Positions 899 to 57,831 of a stretch of 64,000 nucleotides of DNA are shown piece after piece. The translations under genes and the position numbers were made by a program. How positions within the stretch are numbered: the first letter of the stretch is position 1; every line of letters begins with the position of its first letter. The stretch is from the sequence record LC592711.1; one strand, given 5' to 3'. The notes beneath the pieces are model-generated. The model did no database searches and had not been told where the DNA came from. It saw only the letters and a program-made list of their open reading frames with translations.

Positions 899-2281
899 TT
901 AGTCCAACCCTGTCAGACCAGCCTGATTGGGATCGTCCGCTTTCACGAAGATCACCATTGCGACGAATGAACGATAGCCATTTGCCATCAGGCCCTTGCC
1001 GTTCATCTTGGTTTGGATGTGCGCTTTCAACAACACGCCATTGACTTCTTTCACTTCACCCTGATCGAGGAACATGATCTTCACGTTCAGACCAGGCTTG
1101 ATGATTTCGGGATTAGCGTTTTCCCATTCGAGCGTGTAGAAGTGTCCTTGTCCACGAGCGAGTCGAGAAGTCGCCAGATACGGATTTGCCGTAATCCCTT
1201 CAGGCGAGAGTCGAACATTGTTCTTTCCGTTAGGAGCTTGCTCACCAACGAATTCATTGTTGTTCTGACTACGCCTAGCCAACGCCGTATTGTTGCCGCC
1301 CTTGGAGAATCCTTGGACGATCTGGTTAGCATCTGCGAACATGACGCCATTACCAGCATTGTCCTGAATCTGACTCTTGTCGGATTCGATCTTCTTGTTA
1401 CCCGTCGACAGAATGGTCGTGATGCCATTTTGCGTAAGGTAAGTCTTCTCAACCTGGGGAAAGCGCTTGGCAGGAACTGAGATGATGATCAGCTTTTCCT
1501 TCGCCTCATCAAAGCCTGCGGTGTCGTACGGCGGATACACGTACCAGATACGCTCATGAACAAACTGAGCCATACCGGTCGGGAAGATACCACCGCACTT
1601 GGTTTGAACGTAGTCCGCCAGATCCGAGAGCATGACGCCGTGATCGATCACGACCTGGCTTTGCTTATCGGTAGCTGCTGACGGATGCATGTTCACGCCC
1701 AGGAGCTTATTGTCGTCATCGACTTCCAGCTGACCGCAGTTCATCGTGATCAGGTGCTTGACGAGATCTGCATTGGTCGTGTTGGTAAAGTTACCACCCA
1801 CACTCACTTTACTGATGTCATCAAGCAACTTGGGTTTTAGCTGAATATCGACTTCAACGAAGTCAAGCAGGTTCTGAACCTCTCGACTCAAATTCTCGTT
1901 GTTGTTATCTTCCGACATGAAGGGACGAGCCTTCGGATCGATAGACACATTAAACGTTTCGACAGTCACCGATCCAGCAGCATCGGATTTGTCGTAACTG
2001 GTAGGATTGAGCAATTCTGTTTTCAGAATGAACTCAAGATTACCTTTGGCTGGATAAACGAAAGCCGTATAGTCACCCAACATCATGACCACACGAATCA
2101 TCTTCACCGCGCCATAGTTCAGTTCGTAGTCAGCATGCTCGTCGATGTCCGTAATCTTGATCACGTCATACGTCTGCGTGCCAACCTTGAACTGTCCCGT
2201 ATAGCTGTAGAAGTTAGGCTGGAAGCTGGAATTCAATACCCGCTGGATATCAAAGTCCAATGGAGAGCTGTCGATGTTCAT
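899..2281 (-). CDS. putative virion/baseplate structural protein (phiKZ gp101-like by position)
   Basis: 460 aa, last gene of the structural operon; assignment from size and recalled synteny. Confidence 0.55.
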   Translation of the reverse strand: MNIDSSPLDFDIQRVLNSSFQPNFYSYTGQFKVGTQTYDVIKITDIDEHADYELNYGAVKMIRVVMMLGDYTAFVYPAKGNLEFILKTELLNPTSYDKSDAAGSVTVETFNVSIDPKARPFMSEDNNNENLSREVQNLLDFVEVDIQLKPKLLDDISKVSVGGNFTNTTNADLVKHLITMNCGQLEVDDDNKLLGVNMHPSAATDKQSQVVIDHGVMLSDLADYVQTKCGGIFPTGMAQFVHERIWYVYPPYDTAGFDEAKEKLIIISVPAKRFPQVEKTYLTQNGITTILSTGNKKIESDKSQIQDNAGNGVMFADANQIVQGFSKGGNNTALARRSQNNNEFVGEQAPNGKNNVRLSPEGITANPYLATSRLARGQGHFYTLEWENANPEIIKPGLNVKIMFLDQGEVKEVNGVLLKAHIQTKMNGKGLMANGYRSFVAMVIFVKADDPNQAGLTGLD

Positions 2282-2982
2282 TGAATACGTCCGTGAATAC
2301 CTGAACGATCCATGTACGACAAGAAGATGTCGCGCATGGATGGACGCTCCGGCAACTTCTTCTCTTCCACATTTTCCGGCTTGGGCTGATCGGTAACCGG
2401 TACTGTCGAGTACTTGTTGCGAACGGTGTACTGATCCTGCTTTGCCTTGCCTCGATCCCTGACGCGTTTGTCGACTGCATCGAACATTGCGTTGAGGTTG
2501 ACGATTTCTCTTTGAAGACCTTCCGGAATAAACGTGCGAGCAAACTCTTCGCCATACTCATGACCAGCGTACTGATACACGGCTTCAGCGAATTCGTCGA
2601 TCTGCACGAGATCTTCAAACGGCACATTGTGGTTGAACACAGTCGACTGGATGCGTTTAGCCCAATCGAACGTATAGTCCTGGCAGATCTCGTAGATCGC
2701 TTTCGTATCGTCACGTTTAACGATACTGACCATTGTGTGTTCGTGATAGTACTCCACCATCTGAGCGATGGGAATGTACACGGGAGCCTGCTGCTTCATG
2801 AGCTCCCGGTCTACGTTTTGATTACCCGATGTGTGCAGGCCGTAGCGTTCAAGGTACGCCGTACCAAAACGAGCAATACGAGGTACCTTGCACAACCAGA
2901 CCCGCCCCCACAACGGATACCGAGGATCATCGAAAGGGATGCTACTCGGGTTAGGTGCGGGGCGTTTCTTTTGTTCCGTCAT
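2278..2982 (-). CDS. conserved hypothetical protein in structural operon
   Basis: 234 aa ORF with 4-bp overlaps to both neighbours. Confidence 0.7.
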   Translation of the reverse strand: MTEQKKRPAPNPSSIPFDDPRYPLWGRVWLCKVPRIARFGTAYLERYGLHTSGNQNVDRELMKQQAPVYIPIAQMVEYYHEHTMVSIVKRDDTKAIYEICQDYTFDWAKRIQSTVFNHNVPFEDLVQIDEFAEAVYQYAGHEYGEEFARTFIPEGLQREIVNLNAMFDAVDKRVRDRGKAKQDQYTVRNKYSTVPVTDQPKPENVEEKKLPERPSMRDIFLSYMDRSGIHGRIQ

Positions 2983-4328
2983 AGCCTTCTGAGGTTGTAC
3001 TTGATCAGCAACAGGAGAAGCGGAATGTAGTAGAACCGTTCCACATGTCCCCAGTTGAGAATGTCGTCACACACTTTCAGAATATCGCCAGCGGCGATAA
3101 TTTTAAAGTCGATGTAATCCAGCAGCAAACTTTCGAGCAACGACAGATTCGTGTTGTCGCGCGTATAGAAGGCGCTGGAGAGGACGTAGCCGTTGTCCAT
3201 GTCGATGGGCTTGATGATGGGCATCGGAGCGATGGAGCCATCCGTAGGCGGCGTGGGAGGCACGTACGCAGGCATTGTCGACTTGATGTTGACCGGAAGC
3301 AGAGGTTTCTGGATTTCCTTGGCCATCATGAAGTCAACGTTCGTCTTCGGATCGACCGGATACACGACTTGAGCAATGCCCGAGTAGCGCATCGAAGCGA
3401 GAAGTGCCGAACGATGGAAGTTCACGCGCGACGTAACACCGGTCTTCGTGTAGATGAAGTTCATCAACTTCGGGTCACGATTGGATAGCATCGTCCACAG
3501 ACTCATGGACGAAATCGCGCCATCGTCACCGATGTTCAATTCACGAATCGACTGGATATGAACATCATCGAATGAGTTCATGATCGACTTGACGAAATCG
3601 ACCAACCCATGATCGTAAGTCGGCACGTCTTGCATCGGCACGACAATCGTCATGTACTCGCGACTGAAATACTGGTTGAAGTACAACTGGATGTAGTCGT
3701 ACCAGTAGCCGGCCAACTTCTTGCTGTTCTGATAGTCGTCCTCAACGAGCAAGGGATTCTGCAGGTTAAGCAGGAAGTCCTTGACGAAGTAGTAGGTTAC
3801 GATCGTCTTCTGATCCAGGTCGAAGATACGAGTCTGATCATTGATCGCAATCAGCTGATATTCGATCTGGTGGGCATGGTCCACGAAGATCTGCATCGCC
3901 TGCACTTTCGTGACCTTGAAAATACCTTCACGGCCATCAGCAATGCCAGCGCGGAACATGTCACCTTCCTGAGGAACCAGGAAAGGATAGACGTTCGCCA
4001 TACCCTGCATCGTCATTTCGTTGGTTTGCGGATCTTGAGAAACCTGCGTCAAGTCCTGCGTCACTTTCAGTTCCATCGACCAGATGCGACGGTACTGTTG
4101 GAGAACAGCAGGCAAGGACGTATCCTGGCCTTTGATCTCACTATTCTTGTCGAGGATCTGTGAGTAGTAATCCACTACCCACGGCGAGCCTTCGATATAC
4201 GCAAGCAGATCGCTCTGAGGCGTATATTCGGTATCGATGACAGCGGTCTTCACACCCGGCTTGAAAGGACGGACAATGTCCTGTCTGGGCTGGGTAGGAG
4301 CCTTGTCGGTATCTGTCCAAAGCGGCAT
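2979..4328 (-). CDS. putative virion structural protein
   Basis: 449 aa ORF, translationally coupled within the structural cluster. Confidence 0.55.
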   Translation of the reverse strand: MPLWTDTDKAPTQPRQDIVRPFKPGVKTAVIDTEYTPQSDLLAYIEGSPWVVDYYSQILDKNSEIKGQDTSLPAVLQQYRRIWSMELKVTQDLTQVSQDPQTNEMTMQGMANVYPFLVPQEGDMFRAGIADGREGIFKVTKVQAMQIFVDHAHQIEYQLIAINDQTRIFDLDQKTIVTYYFVKDFLLNLQNPLLVEDDYQNSKKLAGYWYDYIQLYFNQYFSREYMTIVVPMQDVPTYDHGLVDFVKSIMNSFDDVHIQSIRELNIGDDGAISSMSLWTMLSNRDPKLMNFIYTKTGVTSRVNFHRSALLASMRYSGIAQVVYPVDPKTNVDFMMAKEIQKPLLPVNIKSTMPAYVPPTPPTDGSIAPMPIIKPIDMDNGYVLSSAFYTRDNTNLSLLESLLLDYIDFKIIAAGDILKVCDDILNWGHVERFYYIPLLLLLIKYNLRRL

Positions 4329-24233: not shown

Positions 24234-24338
24234 GTTGGTCTCCCAGGTTTAACCAGGCTATCTGGCCTAAAAATAAAAAAATAAAACAAAAAAAAAATCC
24301 CCGGACGAACCGGGGAAAAATACACGCGCCGCCGAGGG

Positions 24339-26075: not shown

Positions 26076-26597
26076 TCATTTCTTTTGCTGTTGATTACTA
26101 GGCGTTTGAGCGAGCAGCTTCTCCAACTTCTGAATGGCGCCGTTTCCGGCACCAAGCAGCTTGGCGCTATGCTTCTTCGCCGAGTTAATCACCTTCAGGA
26201 AATCGCGTCGAGGATAACGAATTAACTCATCGAAGGAAAACCCGAAGATTTCATGCACCTTGTTTTCGGCAAACTGGTCGAGACGGAAGTCAAACGGGTC
26301 CACACGAGCCAGATCCTCAAGCGGCGAGCAGAATAACAGGGGCCATGGAACGTTCTTGAAGTCGTCCGGTGCGTCGTGATTGTAGATGCCGAATGCGGTT
26401 TCGTACTTCATCCGCATGAACAACTCCGCGTCCACCACATTGGGTAGTTTGGCGTTGGTCATGGCTTCCAGAATCACGTTGACCGGAGACCTGCCCCTGT
26501 CTTCTATTCTCGCCAACTCGGGTTCTAGTCCGATGTGTCCTCCAGACTCCTCGATGAGAGTCCAAGCAACTTCTGCTCGACCAGCTGAAAAAAAACC
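26076..26597 (-). CDS. -1 frame ORF downstream of the chaperone-like gene (T4 gp51-/lambda T-like); probably the frameshift extension
   Basis: Open in the -1 frame across the T8 run. C-terminal HEIFGFSFDELIRYPRRDFLKVI resembles gp51/T-type chaperone tails. No convincing own RBS. Confidence 0.55.
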   Translation of the reverse strand, partial: GFFSAGRAEVAWTLIEESGGHIGLEPELARIEDRGRSPVNVILEAMTNAKLPNVVDAELFMRMKYETAFGIYNHDAPDDFKNVPWPLLFCSPLEDLARVDPFDFRLDQFAENKVHEIFGFSFDELIRYPRRDFLKVINSAKKHSAKLLGAGNGAIQKLEKLLAQTPSNQQQKK

Positions 26598-28051
26598 GAA
26601 ACCGCATCGAGGGCGATCAGGCGCGGCCACTTGTCGCCGGACAGGGTGTCCTCGTACTCGTTGACCGAGGTCGTCGCAATGATTGCGACTTGCGTGTTGT
26701 TGATGTAGTCGCTGATCGCCTTGAAGAACTTCCGGGAGATCTCGTCGGAGGCCGAGAGAGACACAAGCACCTTGTCCACGTTTTCACGCGTGGTATAGAG
26801 CTCGCCATCTTCTTCGATAGCCTTAACGTAGTGCGAGTACTGGCGCAGACGGGAAGCCTTAGCCAATTGGCTGATGTACTGCATGCGCTTCTGGTCGGTT
26901 GCTTCCGCGCCAAGAGCTTCGTGAACCGCGGCGTTGATCTCGTTGATCCACTTCTCGCCGGTGTCGAAGTACTCGCGCAGATTCGGCGTATACAGATGCA
27001 ACTTCACACCTTCGCCGATTTCGACCACCGTGTTCTGGTTGAAGACGAACTGGTCCTTGTAGTCCTTGATCGTCTTGAGCGTCATCGGCGCTTCGATACG
27101 CTTGACCATGTGCGCCAGTTGCTCTTCCTTGAACATTTTGGCGTTCATGAAGAGACACTTGCGCAGGTCGATGATCTGATGCAGTTCTTCCTTCGGCAGC
27201 TTCGTATCTTCCGTGAAGACAGCCCGCGACATCGGGAAGCCGTTCGGATAGATCGAGGACGCGACCGACAGAGCGATCAGCGGCAGATCGTTCACAGTGA
27301 TGTGATCGACCAGGTTTTCCTTGGGCAGATCGTTGACCGTCGTTTCGATCAGCGAGCCAACCCATGCTTCGAAAACAGCTTTGGCCGTGAAGACCGAGTT
27401 GTTCGCGAACATGAGACCGTGCGTGGCCCGGCCGAGCTTGATCGGTTCAGCGATGATGGTACGCCACAGGCCGATGATGTCGTATTCTTCCAGCGGCTTC
27501 ACAGTCGCATAGAAGCCCGAACCAACGAGCGGAACCTGTACCGGCGAACCCAGACCCAGACGCGCACGAACCGACAGGTTCAAACGCTCCGAGCTCATCT
27601 TCGCGCCACGTCCCTTGTTCGTGAACTTGGGACGACCGACGTTGACGTTCTGACCTGCGTAGTTCAGAGCATTGCGCCATTCGGCATTCGGGTCAGCGAG
27701 CGCATCTTCGAACACGCCATGAGCCGGAACCGAACGGAAACCGTTGAGCAGCGTCTGATACCAGTTCACCGCATCTTCGTTGACGTCGACTTCGCCCATC
27801 TTGGTCGCAGTCATGTCGTCGTTGATACGGCTTGCCGAATCAGGCAGAAGAGGAACCAGGATATCCTGGAACTTCTTCAGTTCTTCTTCGCTGGGAGCAG
27901 GCGACATCAAGTCGGTCTTGCTTTCCCAGTTCTTTGCTTGCTTGGGCACCTCGACGGTCTGCGGGTCGATACTGACCTGCGTTTCGTCGGGCATGTGAAG
28001 CTCGGGCTCGTCACCCGAGCCGCCCTGGTTGTCTTCAGGAGCGATTGCCAT
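26525..28051 (-). CDS. putative tail/baseplate assembly chaperone (T4 gp26-/lambda G-like; phiKZ gp77-like by position)
   Basis: 508 aa; NDLPLIALSVASSIYPNG resembles gp26-type motif; ends VSVFFQL at a slippery run. Confidence 0.5.
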   Translation of the reverse strand: MAIAPEDNQGGSGDEPELHMPDETQVSIDPQTVEVPKQAKNWESKTDLMSPAPSEEELKKFQDILVPLLPDSASRINDDMTATKMGEVDVNEDAVNWYQTLLNGFRSVPAHGVFEDALADPNAEWRNALNYAGQNVNVGRPKFTNKGRGAKMSSERLNLSVRARLGLGSPVQVPLVGSGFYATVKPLEEYDIIGLWRTIIAEPIKLGRATHGLMFANNSVFTAKAVFEAWVGSLIETTVNDLPKENLVDHITVNDLPLIALSVASSIYPNGFPMSRAVFTEDTKLPKEELHQIIDLRKCLFMNAKMFKEEQLAHMVKRIEAPMTLKTIKDYKDQFVFNQNTVVEIGEGVKLHLYTPNLREYFDTGEKWINEINAAVHEALGAEATDQKRMQYISQLAKASRLRQYSHYVKAIEEDGELYTTRENVDKVLVSLSASDEISRKFFKAISDYINNTQVAIIATTSVNEYEDTLSGDKWPRLIALDAVSVFFQLVEQKLLGLSSRSLEDTSD

Positions 28052-36449: not shown

Positions 36450-36715
36450 ACTACTTAACCACCCAAGCTGCGCCTTCGTAAAGGGGTGGCCCGAGATCTT
36501 TATCGTTGGTTAGAACGCTTTGTTGAGCCGCACACCGTAGGAGGTTGGAGTATGCGCTCGAACTCGATCTCAAAGCCGAAAAAAAATAGCAGGAAGGCAT
36601 CTTCCTGCTAAAGGGGGAGTTACCCCGAACGTACCGACTCCCTTCACCACAAAGGAGTTTGCTGCCGCATGAGCGTGCTGCTAATCGAGTCGGTCGTTCT
36701 GGGCAAATCATAGCT
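36450..36715 (-). ncRNA. candidate small structured RNA(s): terminator-ended module plus anti-SD hairpin module
   Basis: ~290 nt intergenic gap with ACCGAC/GTCGGT and CTCCTTT/AAGGGAG stems, a strong terminator at 36579-36610, then a hairpin with loop UCCAACCUCCUACG. Confidence 0.4.
36579..36610 (-). terminator. intrinsic terminator
   Basis: 10-bp perfect stem plus T8. Confidence 0.8.
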
Positions 36716-36730
36716 ACAGCATTTATTTTT

Positions 36731-37240
36731 TTATAGTTCGACGAAGTCCACCTTCGGACCATAACGTAATCCACCCGACCATTCGCTGCTATCACGCAGC
36801 TTACCATGAATGGTTGAACGGATAATGCTTTCGCGTTGGGACTTGCTGTAGTAGAGGCGCGGAATATACATGTCGCATTCTACAGCGATATTGTCGACGG
36901 ACACCAACACTTTGACAGGCAGCATGTGATCATGACGACCCATGTTATCCCGATCGTTCAGCGCTTCAGCAATTTTCAAAAAGGTATTGCGCTGATTCGT
37001 GAGATAGTCATAAGCCGGATCGAACGGACCGCAGTCTTGTGCCAGTTGTTCGCCTTCATTAACGAGTCGGATACACTCGTCGTAGGAAATGGGGCCGATG
37101 GTTTTTAACCACAACGGAAGCATCATCTCGGCTCGACGCTTCAGTCTGTCACTGCCTGGACCACGATCCTCCATCAGGTCCTTCAAATTGGCTTCGCGTT
37201 TTTTCGCGATTTGGTCTTCTAGTTCTTGACGGGAAAGCAT
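36731..37240 (-). CDS. hypothetical protein
   Basis: 169 aa ORF in minus-strand operon. Confidence 0.7.
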   Translation of the reverse strand: MLSRQELEDQIAKKREANLKDLMEDRGPGSDRLKRRAEMMLPLWLKTIGPISYDECIRLVNEGEQLAQDCGPFDPAYDYLTNQRNTFLKIAEALNDRDNMGRHDHMLPVKVLVSVDNIAVECDMYIPRLYYSKSQRESIIRSTIHGKLRDSSEWSGGLRYGPKVDFVEL

Positions 37241-56071: not shown

Positions 56072-56696
56072 TTTCGAGGAGATTCCCGAGATTCAGGATC
56101 TTGTCGTGCTTGCCGTAGCGTTCGAAGATCGCATTCCAGATACGCATGTTCGCGTAGACTTGTTCAGTCGGCTTGTCCTTGATGTGCAGACCCGAAAGTT
56201 TCTTGTTCAGGAACTGCTGCGAAGCTGCTGCATCGAATTCCTTCAGACGCGAATAATGACGCTCGATCAGCGTCATCGATTCACCACCCGGCTTCGATTG
56301 TTCGAGAATCGACGTATCGAAGAGCGGCGGAACCGTGAAGAGGATCTTGCCGTTTTCATCGACGATGTCGACCGAAACCTTTTCACCACCAGCAACCTTT
56401 TCGAGCCAGGTGCGGTAGTTCACTTCTGCGGTCGGCTGGACTTCACCAGCGAAGAGCGGCAGGAAGTGTTCGACGAAGAGCGTTTCCGGGAACTGCGAAT
56501 TCTGCTCGATTTGCGTGAGCGAGTTCGCAATGCCGCGGATGTCGATACCGATGCCCATCCGGCGTTGTTGCTGGAAGTTGGCAAAGACCTTCATCGCTTC
56601 TTGCTGGCGCGGATGAGGCTGAGCAACATCGGTTTGAGGTTCCGGCACACGGGAAGTCGTGCCATCCAGTTTGTTGTCGAGTTCGCGTTGGTTCAT
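55980..56696 (-). CDS. conserved hypothetical protein
   Basis: 238 aa ORF in the nucleus block. Confidence 0.7.
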   Translation of the reverse strand: MNQRELDNKLDGTTSRVPEPQTDVAQPHPRQQEAMKVFANFQQQRRMGIGIDIRGIANSLTQIEQNSQFPETLFVEHFLPLFAGEVQPTAEVNYRTWLEKVAGGEKVSVDIVDENGKILFTVPPLFDTSILEQSKPGGESMTLIERHYSRLKEFDAAASQQFLNKKLSGLHIKDKPTEQVYANMRIWNAIFERYGKHDKILNLGNLLENDPNKDKAVDLGGSSSANTADVGDYELDTD

Positions 56697-57109
56697 GTTG
56701 GGCTTCCTGTTGCATCGACGTTATAGATGCGCTGGACTTGAGTGCCCAGCAGGTCAATAGCTCTCGACAGATCGTGGCGAATACCCTGATCGTCGACGAA
56801 GCTACATCCTATCGTAATCGTCAATGAAGTATTATCGTTCGGATCAGTTTGAGCAACATTGCAATCCATCTGCACGTTGGTAAACTGGGTGGAGAAATAC
56901 GTGTTCAGATACGCATTCAGATTGGACGTAAGCTCGCCATCCGAAGTCGAATCTGCTATCAGTGACTGATACGACGTCACATTCAGCTTGTCTTTATAGA
57001 ACTGCGTCTGGCTCTTCTGTGTCGTAAAGAAGTGTGCCAGCATGTAGTCTGCTTTTTCGAGCGGGTTCGACACGAAACCACTCGGGGAATAAGTCGGAAG
57101 CAAAGCCAT
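56693..57109 (-). CDS. conserved hypothetical protein
   Basis: Probable start MALLPTY downstream of the terminator at 57136-57162; the track extends it to 57172. Confidence 0.6.
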   Translation of the reverse strand: MALLPTYSPSGFVSNPLEKADYMLAHFFTTQKSQTQFYKDKLNVTSYQSLIADSTSDGELTSNLNAYLNTYFSTQFTNVQMDCNVAQTDPNDNTSLTITIGCSFVDDQGIRHDLSRAIDLLGTQVQRIYNVDATGSPT

Positions 57110-57125
57110 TTTCAGATCCCGAAAA

Positions 57126-57162
57126 CAAAAAAAAATATGGTCAGGGATTTCCCCTGACCATA
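57126..57162 (-). terminator. intrinsic terminator
   Basis: 11-bp stem plus long U-tract. Confidence 0.7.
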
Positions 57163-57171
57163 CTCCGAACA

Positions 57172-57831
57172 TTACATGTTCTCGTTCAACACCGAAGTCG
57201 GATCTTTCTTCTTCGCCGCATAATGCGCTTCAAGCACATCCCACGTCGAGATGATGTCGCCCTGTTCGATTACGTCGAGATCCCGTTCATCAACGGAATC
57301 GTTCATATCCGAATAGAGGACAAATGCGTCTTCGCCTTCACCGAGGCGATTGAAGTCATTCTTGATGCCATGACGATCTTCCGTCCAGATGACACCATCA
57401 ATGACACGCATGAAGTCCGGGTCATCGAACCCACGTCGTTCGGGATAGCGATTGCGATAACTGTCCGAATACCCATCGATTGCCTGCTGTTCATGCAGGA
57501 TTCTCGACATGATATTAGCCATGAGATAGCGTTGCATCACAGGCTTTGCGTTCTGGATGGATTCGATCGTCGACAACGGACGGATCACATCTTTACGCAT
57601 CGGATCAGCAGTCTGACGAACACGTGCTCGAATACGACGCAGTGCTCGCTCGCCATTATACCGATCAAACGCTTCACGCGAATCCTCAAAGAACCCATTG
57701 AAGAGTTCACTGATTCTCGGCGCATAGCGTTCGACACGATCTCTCAGATAACTGAGAGTTCCCTGATGGGGTTCTCCAAACAATTCGGCGTCGATATCCT
57801 CTTCACTGATATAACCGCCTCTGATTCCCAT
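57172..57831 (-). CDS. conserved hypothetical protein
   Basis: 219 aa, coupled to the nvRNAP stop. Confidence 0.7.
   Translation of the reverse strand: MGIRGGYISEEDIDAELFGEPHQGTLSYLRDRVERYAPRISELFNGFFEDSREAFDRYNGERALRRIRARVRQTADPMRKDVIRPLSTIESIQNAKPVMQRYLMANIMSRILHEQQAIDGYSDSYRNRYPERRGFDDPDFMRVIDGVIWTEDRHGIKNDFNRLGEGEDAFVLYSDMNDSVDERDLDVIEQGDIISTWDVLEAHYAAKKKDPTSVLNENM

Follow-up and report, generated by a model that had tools for sequence, protein, structure and literature searches.

A T-run on invariant phenylalanine codons suggests that a core gene of nucleus-forming jumbo phages is joined to the following frame by a -1 shift

How is an open reading frame expressed that overlaps the end of the preceding gene in the -1 frame and that has no well-spaced ribosome-binding site at its first ATG? 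The question is raised by a pair of genes in the last 64 kilobases (kb) of the genome of Burkholderia phage FLC6 (LC592711.1), a phiKZ-like jumbo phage of the genus Chiangmaivirus. This stretch of 64,000 nucleotides (nt) is called the window here, and positions are counted from its first letter; the 2.4-kb region around the gene pair matches LC592711.1 at 100%. The upstream gene (FLC6_gp204) is referred to as gene A and the downstream gene (FLC6_gp203) as gene B. The analysis described below suggests that gene A and the frame following it probably constitute a single expression unit with two products, the longer of which would be made by a -1 ribosomal slip at a U-run close to the end of gene A. 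The elements on which this proposal is built are as follows.

28051..26525, minus strand: gene A (FLC6_gp204), an open reading frame with translation of 508 amino acids, matching phrog_4585 over its full length; its orthologs are phiKZ gp77 (PHIKZ077), Goslar gp81, 201phi2-1 gp136 and SPN3US gp39.
26595-26588, minus strand: putative slip site, a run of eight T (T8), with GG before the run at 26597-26596.
26525..26594, minus strand: overlap zone, which in the 0 frame holds the last 22 codons and the stop of gene A (a C-terminal helix) and in the -1 frame the putative fusion linker.
26076..26594, minus strand: extension in the -1 frame, 172 codons plus stop, comprising the linker and domain B (phrog_12109).
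26076..26462, minus strand: gene B as annotated (FLC6_gp203), 128 amino acids.
26529..26537, minus strand: codons for an H-x-G motif at residues 20-22 of the -1 reading, counted from the site; all candidate starts of gene B lie further downstream.

Gene A corresponds to the Chimalliviridae core gene cg18 (PhiKZ gp077, Goslar gp081, RAY gp267), which is listed as a 'hypothetical protein' (Prichard et al. 2023, supplement, PMC10299810).

The putative slip site in FLC6 and across the family

In the frame of gene A the T8 run is read TCG GTT TTT TTT CAG, which places the heptamer T TTT TTT (26594-26588) in the X XXY YYZ register on the gene's two invariant Phe codons, with 20 sense codons between the second Phe of the site and the TAG stop. 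The open reading frame at 26630..26076 (minus strand) lies in the -1 frame relative to gene A and remains open across the run; counted from the run it extends for 172 codons, of which 170 lie beyond the two Phe codons. Its first ATG, at 26462, is preceded by GGAAG merely 2 nt upstream, whereas for gene A the distance between AAGGAA and the ATG is 8 nt. TTT is an unusual codon in this setting: gene A contains 17 TTC and 2 TTT, both TTT being those at the T8 run, and TTT makes up 19% of the Phe codons in the window's long open frames. Runs of A or T of at least eight bases occur just four times in the whole window. An earlier reading of this DNA, made from its letters alone (the sequence-only reading), had described the run with its codons, its coordinates and its position 20 codons before the stop, the -1 frame continuing for 170 more codons to 26076, the poorly spaced ribosome-binding site and the rarity of TTT, and each of these points was verified on the minus strand.

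A tblastn search with gene A yielded homologs in 219 phage records, spread over the jumbo phages that form a nucleus, and 95 loci were examined: 12 from named phages, 80 from IMG/VR, and then Goslar, SPN3US and 201phi2-1. The named phages among the 95 include phiKZ, 201phi2-1, Goslar, SPN3US, DT01, BRkr and FLC9. The A proteins of this set are 18-93% identical and its GC content runs from 29 to 60%. Statistics on the junction are given for 83 distinct junctions, lengths of the -1 frame for 82 complete loci, and comparisons of the encoded sequence for 81 distinct -1 pieces.

In eight genomes of the genus Chiangmaivirus, with DNA identities down to 82%, the T8 run and the following 26 nt belong to an invariant block of 38 nt, free of insertions or deletions, and the -1 frame is open in 8/8. 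Across the wider family, Phe-Phe is found 10-22 codons before the gene A stop in all examined A proteins but one, and the consensus of the site is N NNT TTT TTY. The first Phe codon is TTT at 82 of the 83 junctions, compared with 32% TTT elsewhere in the same A genes, and at loci with a GC content of at least 50% (n = 53) it is TTT in 53/53 against a background of 16%. When the sequences were grouped into 50%-identity clusters, TTT was always used in 34 of 35 lineages and in 18/18 of the high-GC lineages. The second Phe codon is TTT in 66 cases and TTC in 17, and the base preceding the site is T in 72, which gives a perfect T TTT TTY. By length, the runs comprise one T5, 13 T6, 37 T7, 28 T8 and four T9.

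The frame relationship is equally constant. The downstream open reading frame lies in the -1 frame in 95/95 loci. Counted from the site, this frame continues without a stop for 152-186 codons (median 168) in each of the 82 complete loci; for the +1 frame the median is 16 codons. Since every relative that we examined shares it, the pattern seen in FLC6 is far beyond chance. A T-run and a -1 relationship shared among relatives, as implied by the sequence-only reading, thus held in 95 loci with no variation of frame offset, and its proposal of a ~658-residue fusion beside the 508-residue product, in a layout like that of lambda G/GT, gains strong support from comparison of the sequences.

The +1 frame is also open in the FLC6 clade, for ~90 codons from the site (window 26525-26800, minus strand), probably as an effect of composition, since this openness is not conserved elsewhere in the family. 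Gene A itself ranges from 354 to 690 amino acids. In SPN3US-type phages (locus L094, SPN3US 1613-3583; BFVD hits of 686-687 amino acids) it has ~650-690 amino acids and belongs to phrog_8054; the larger size apparently reflects a longer N-terminal part, with the slip site and the -1 open reading frame unchanged.

Ribosomal or transcriptional slip as possible mechanisms

In the mechanism that we propose, most ribosomes would read gene A to its stop and produce the 508-residue protein, and a fraction would slip back by one base on the U-run encoding the invariant Phe-Phe, with tRNA-Phe re-pairing with UUU in the -1 frame. The shifted ribosomes would swap the last ~20-residue helix of A for a short linker and a ~150-residue helical domain B, which would have no start of its own, and the result would be an A-B fusion of ~658 residues. 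Such a fusion would lose most of the last helix predicted for A (residues 483-506 of the model). That the shift takes place, at some efficiency, and that the ribosome is its cause we infer from the observed anatomy and conservation of the locus, together with its codon bias and the coding signature described in the next section.

Several observations weigh against this proposal. The heptamer is not always perfect: the base before TTT is G or A in 11 of the 83 junctions, the shortest run, at one locus, is a T5, and one A protein has Val-Phe on GTT TTT in place of Phe-Phe. The T-richness of the site is partly forced by the protein, since Phe-Phe itself is invariant in A, and only codon choice and the preceding base are free of this constraint. 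The fold energy of the FLC6 region downstream of the run was no better than that of shuffled sequence (z = -0.03), and no family-wide excess of RNA structure was found downstream of the site. The fusion is a prediction from sequence anatomy and conservation.

One predicted element close to the run is a possible stimulator of the shift:

26562..26580, minus strand: small predicted hairpin of 7 base pairs (bp), which starts 7 nt past the T-run and hardly varies among 7 relatives.

The same A-B fusion could also result from a slip in transcription, if RNA polymerase stuttered on the T/A run and added one extra U to some of the mRNAs. The polymerase would in this case be the phage-encoded multisubunit enzyme inside the phage nucleus, and mRNAs carrying the extra U would need no ribosomal slip. 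The addition of one base would lead into precisely the -1 frame seen here, the site consists of a single repeated base and reaches 8-9 T in 32 of the 83 junctions (a further point against the ribosome as the agent), and no conserved RNA structure such as commonly promotes ribosomal shifting was found downstream of it. The run is, however, merely 5-7 T long in the other 51 junctions, which is short for efficient polymerase slippage; established runs of this type, in Thermus dnaX and Shigella mxiE, are ~9 long. The run also always lies in the X XXY YYZ register that tRNA re-pairing needs, although this is a weak point, the conserved Phe-Phe forcing the same register. Because most runs have 5-7 T and always stand in the heptamer register, we take a slip of tRNA-Phe on the ribosome as the simplest explanation and consider a transcriptional slip unlikely, though less so for the runs of 8-9 T.

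A terminator-like hit immediately upstream of the site (26600-26618, minus strand), in which a weak 6-bp stem is followed by the T8 run, was set aside as probably due to chance, since there are fewer such hits than in shuffled sequence. Were the slip transcriptional, a pause hairpin at this position, immediately in front of the run, could play a part.

The downstream frame and its start codons

If gene B were translated after a -1 shift, its coding region would reach back to the run. The -1 pieces from across the family are homologous to one another: a phmmer search with the FLC6 piece recovered 70 of the 81, and one profile iteration recovered them all. His and Gly occupy residues 20 and 22 after the site in 90% and 91% of the pieces, respectively, and are among the best conserved positions. 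This H-x-G motif lies upstream of any start codon in about 78 of the 82 complete loci, the first ATG, GTG or TTG of the -1 frame being at or beyond codon 22 in all but four of them. In seven genomes of the FLC6 clade we compared variability by codon position. Between the stop of A and the annotated ATG of B, positions 1/2/3 of the -1 frame vary in 65/52/95% of columns; the corresponding values for the body of B are 55/40/91%. The third-position variability of A falls from 92% in the rest of the gene to 41% within the overlap. The third-position periodicity of a coding sequence is thus seen in the -1 frame between the A stop and the ATG, and across the overlap A is restricted in its synonymous changes.

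It could be argued that gene B is a separate small protein with a variable or non-canonical start of its own, or one made by termination-reinitiation, and that the T-run is a by-product of Phe-Phe. Every public annotation treats it as its own gene, and in FLC6 an in-frame TTG, GTG and ATG lie 26-44 codons past the run, with GGAAG near the ATG. The candidate starts, however, vary even among eight close relatives: the annotators of these Chiangmaivirus genomes picked five different ones, giving proteins of 127-144 amino acids, and the TTG at -1 codon 26 is ATG, CTA or AAG in other members of the genus. Gene callers across the family assign B 71-171 amino acids. Moreover, seven loci have no ATG, GTG or TTG for long distances (87 codons in phiKZ and 102-153 codons in the six others), and in general the H-x-G motif and the coding periodicity are found upstream of the starts. 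An independent gene would not be expected to keep the -1 phase in 95/95 loci, and its independence would leave the use of TTT in 53/53 high-GC loci, against the 16% background, unexplained. We regard a separate B as very improbable. Instead, the constant -1 phase, the TTT bias, the homology of the -1 pieces, the motif upstream of the starts and the start-less loci lead us to propose that gene B is translated only as part of the A-B fusion, following a -1 shift. Most likely, the annotated FLC6_gp203 is only the 3' part of the real coding region.

The annotation of phiKZ (NC_004629.1; locus L009, 3724-4239) is a case in point. PHIKZ076.4 is annotated with 80 amino acids, and its frame is open for 167 codons, starting at a T7 run inside PHIKZ077; between that run and PHIKZ076.4 the frame contains neither ATG nor GTG nor TTG. 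Since the frame reaches back to the T7 run, PHIKZ076.4 is the tail end of a 167-codon frame, and the phiKZ annotation misses most of the B coding region.

The idea that a homopolymer sequencing error or a recent frameshift mutation split a single ~658-residue gene is effectively refuted: although homopolymer runs are the commonest site of sequencing indels, the identical split, in place and phase, is seen in 95 loci from independent isolates and metagenomes of many groups, with runs of 5-9, and no unsplit version is present among the A or B homologs found. Specifically, no in-frame A-B fusion was detected among 41 A homologs (503-537 amino acids, apart from one partial hit of 309) or among the best 150 of 256 B clusters obtained from 1.84 billion representatives (71-171 amino acids). 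The sole long B hit, P0268, is not a fusion and proved to be a tandem-repeat artefact.

The remaining long A/T runs of the window lie elsewhere. A T9 run (minus strand, 57127-57135) is located 37-45 nt inside the open reading frame 56693..57172; a T8 run (36579-36586) is inside the open reading frame 36451..36807, which overlaps the upstream open reading frame 36731..37240 by 77 nt; and a T10 run (24288-24297) is in the intergenic gap 24234-24338.

Possible function and comparison with known systems

The sequence-only reading had gone on to interpret the genes as a tail chaperone pair of the G/GT type, with A resembling phage T4 gp26 and B resembling T4 gp51. Sequence searches of A and B against Pfam, NCBIfam and PDB gave no match, and PHROGs placed them in two or three families only, all unannotated. 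An AlphaFold model of FLC6 A (predicted local distance difference test score, pLDDT, 71; predicted template modelling score, pTM, 0.72) had no fold match in PDB by Foldseek (best expectation value E = 0.38). Beyond its own orthologs, the same model matched in BFVD a set of proteins of T4-like phages of 225-310 amino acids (E 2.5e-5 to 6e-3, template modelling (TM) score ~0.5), named as baseplate hub assembly protein, hub subunit or hub assembly chaperone. Their names and sizes correspond to the T4 gp51 family (Pfam PF12322), one member of which is annotated as 'tape measure protein assembly chaperone'. All T4 gp51 homologs examined carry PF12322, and the hidden Markov model of this family matched neither FLC6 A nor any of five diverse orthologs, even at E up to 10. 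Alignment of 84 A sequences with 93 gp51 sequences by hhalign returned a weak signal over ~85 columns near the C-terminus of A, with a probability of 18-23% and P ~1e-3 (0.28 for the reversed control). A may thus bear a weak resemblance to a gp51-type hub assembly protein, at the level of the predicted fold only.

Other assignments were rejected. As T4 gp26, A scored an hhalign probability of 6% over 27 columns and a Foldseek E of 1.6 against T4 Gp26'; as a tail assembly chaperone by fold, its Foldseek hits bearing that name had E of at least 0.5. For B as gp26, gp51 or gp28 the hhalign probabilities were at most 1%, and in Foldseek a low-confidence model of B (pLDDT 61) matched only its own jumbo-phage orthologs. 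Given these hhalign and Foldseek results, the likeness of A to gp26 and of B to gp51 is unsupported, and it is to gp51 that A shows its weak fold link.

A CxxC pair is located ~25 residues before Phe-Phe in the A proteins of phiKZ, DT01 and BRkr (by alignment, opposite window 26600-26680), and this region is shortened by a small deletion in those of FLC6, RSF1 and FLC9. CxxC motifs also occur in T4 gp26 and gp51, and the weak hhalign matches of A map to the CxxC region.

The genomic context was inspected in FLC6, phiKZ, 201phi2-1, Goslar and SPN3US. In these five phages the pair is surrounded by hypothetical genes and by genes for virion RNA polymerase subunits and a helicase, and it does not occupy the position between the genes for tail tube and tape measure. 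The 201phi2-1 record carries a mass-spectrometry note for the neighbours gp138 and gp139, not for gp136 or gp135. This neighbourhood, the lack of any match in Pfam, NCBIfam or PDB and the weakness of a functional link that has an hhalign probability of just 18-23% also speak against the proposal as a whole. Of the idea of a G/GT-type tail chaperone pair, the frameshift layout is well supported and the functional labels, in the form given, are not: the name 'tail chaperone' stays hypothetical because the assigned likenesses to gp26 and gp51 are missing, no tail genes are adjacent, and A is three to five times larger than the upstream protein of such pairs.

By analogy with lambda G/GT and T4 gp51, and in view of the fold match of A and of the missing mass-spectrometry notes for gp136 and gp135, we tentatively suggest that the pair could be a non-virion assembly factor for the baseplate hub or the tape measure of the tail; we hold this to be a possibility somewhat short of even. 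A bolder extension, which we find rather doubtful, is that cg18 is needed in two isoforms in all nucleus-forming jumbo phages, with the pair as their missing hub/tape-measure chaperone, or else that the slip is made by the phage RNA polymerase. If the former were true, T4 gp51 would be tied to the principle of the frameshifted G/GT chaperones; the latter would represent programmed transcriptional slippage by a non-canonical multisubunit polymerase within the phage nucleus.

A search of the full-text literature, recent reviews included and subscription journals mostly outside its coverage, found no published description of this frameshift in phiKZ-like phages; where the retrieved papers speak of a 'gp77', they mean genes of other phages with a different numbering. 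The negative agrees with what the sequence-only reading had supposed, and the family-wide layout appears never to have been annotated or described. The mechanism would be of a well-known kind; its unusual aspect would be its universality in a phage family that is both large and intensively studied. Gene A belongs to the roughly 70 Chimalliviridae core genes and has no assigned function, while the annotation of gene B is inconsistent (71-171 amino acids or absent, with just an 80-residue remnant in phiKZ). Recognising a frameshift would correct the annotation of every phiKZ-like genome, including those of model phages and therapy candidates, and would join an orphan open reading frame to a core gene. 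It also predicts a protein of ~650-690 amino acids that can be searched for in existing proteomic and ribosome-profiling data, and it supplies an initial idea of function that can be tested, namely an assembly factor like T4 gp51 present in two forms at a fixed ratio. Finally, the locus would be a clean case from nature of shifting on a simple U-run, with hosts that range from Vibrio to Burkholderia.

Comparison with established cases helps to place the A/B pair. In Escherichia coli dnaX (tau/gamma) a programmed -1 shift on a homopolymeric heptamer generates two isoforms, and in Thermus dnaX the same outcome is achieved by transcriptional slippage. The E. coli shift shortens the protein and has strong flanking stimulators, whereas the A/B shift would lengthen it and no conserved stimulator was found. 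In gene 10 of T7 and T3 (10A/10B), ribosomes slip into the -1 frame at a U-rich heptamer close to the gene's end, which yields a minor product with a longer C-terminus. There a short tail is added to the major capsid protein; in the A/B case a whole conserved domain would be added to what is probably a non-virion protein.

In the case of T4 gp51, the likeness is in the predicted fold of A, which matches the family with a TM score of ~0.5 over the target, and in the fact that, like gp51, A is not marked as structural or as detected by mass spectrometry in the records of phiKZ and 201phi2-1. A has roughly twice the length of gp51, and gene 51 stands beside the hub genes 27-28-29, unlike A/B. To our knowledge, T4 gene 51 is not frameshifted.

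The pairs G/GT of lambda and E/E+E' of P2 provide the remaining comparison. In chaperones of this type the upstream protein has ~100-150 amino acids, so that A, with 354-690, is three to five times larger; the lambda and P2 pairs lie between the tail tube and tape-measure genes and the A/B pair does not; and neither sequence nor fold matches A to these chaperone families (E = 0.5 for its best Foldseek hit with the name 'tail assembly chaperone'). The layout, on the other hand, is closely alike. The anatomy and conservation of A/B point to a -1 shift that, as in G/GT, would occur late in the first open reading frame. In both settings two open reading frames overlap and the slip site, or its candidate, is located few codons before the first stop; the slip site of P2 is likewise a T-run. 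The second open reading frame has no start of its own and would be made, in A/B as in lambda and P2, only as a C-terminal extension of the first. This arrangement is conserved despite very diverse sequences, and both products are presumably needed in a fixed ratio.

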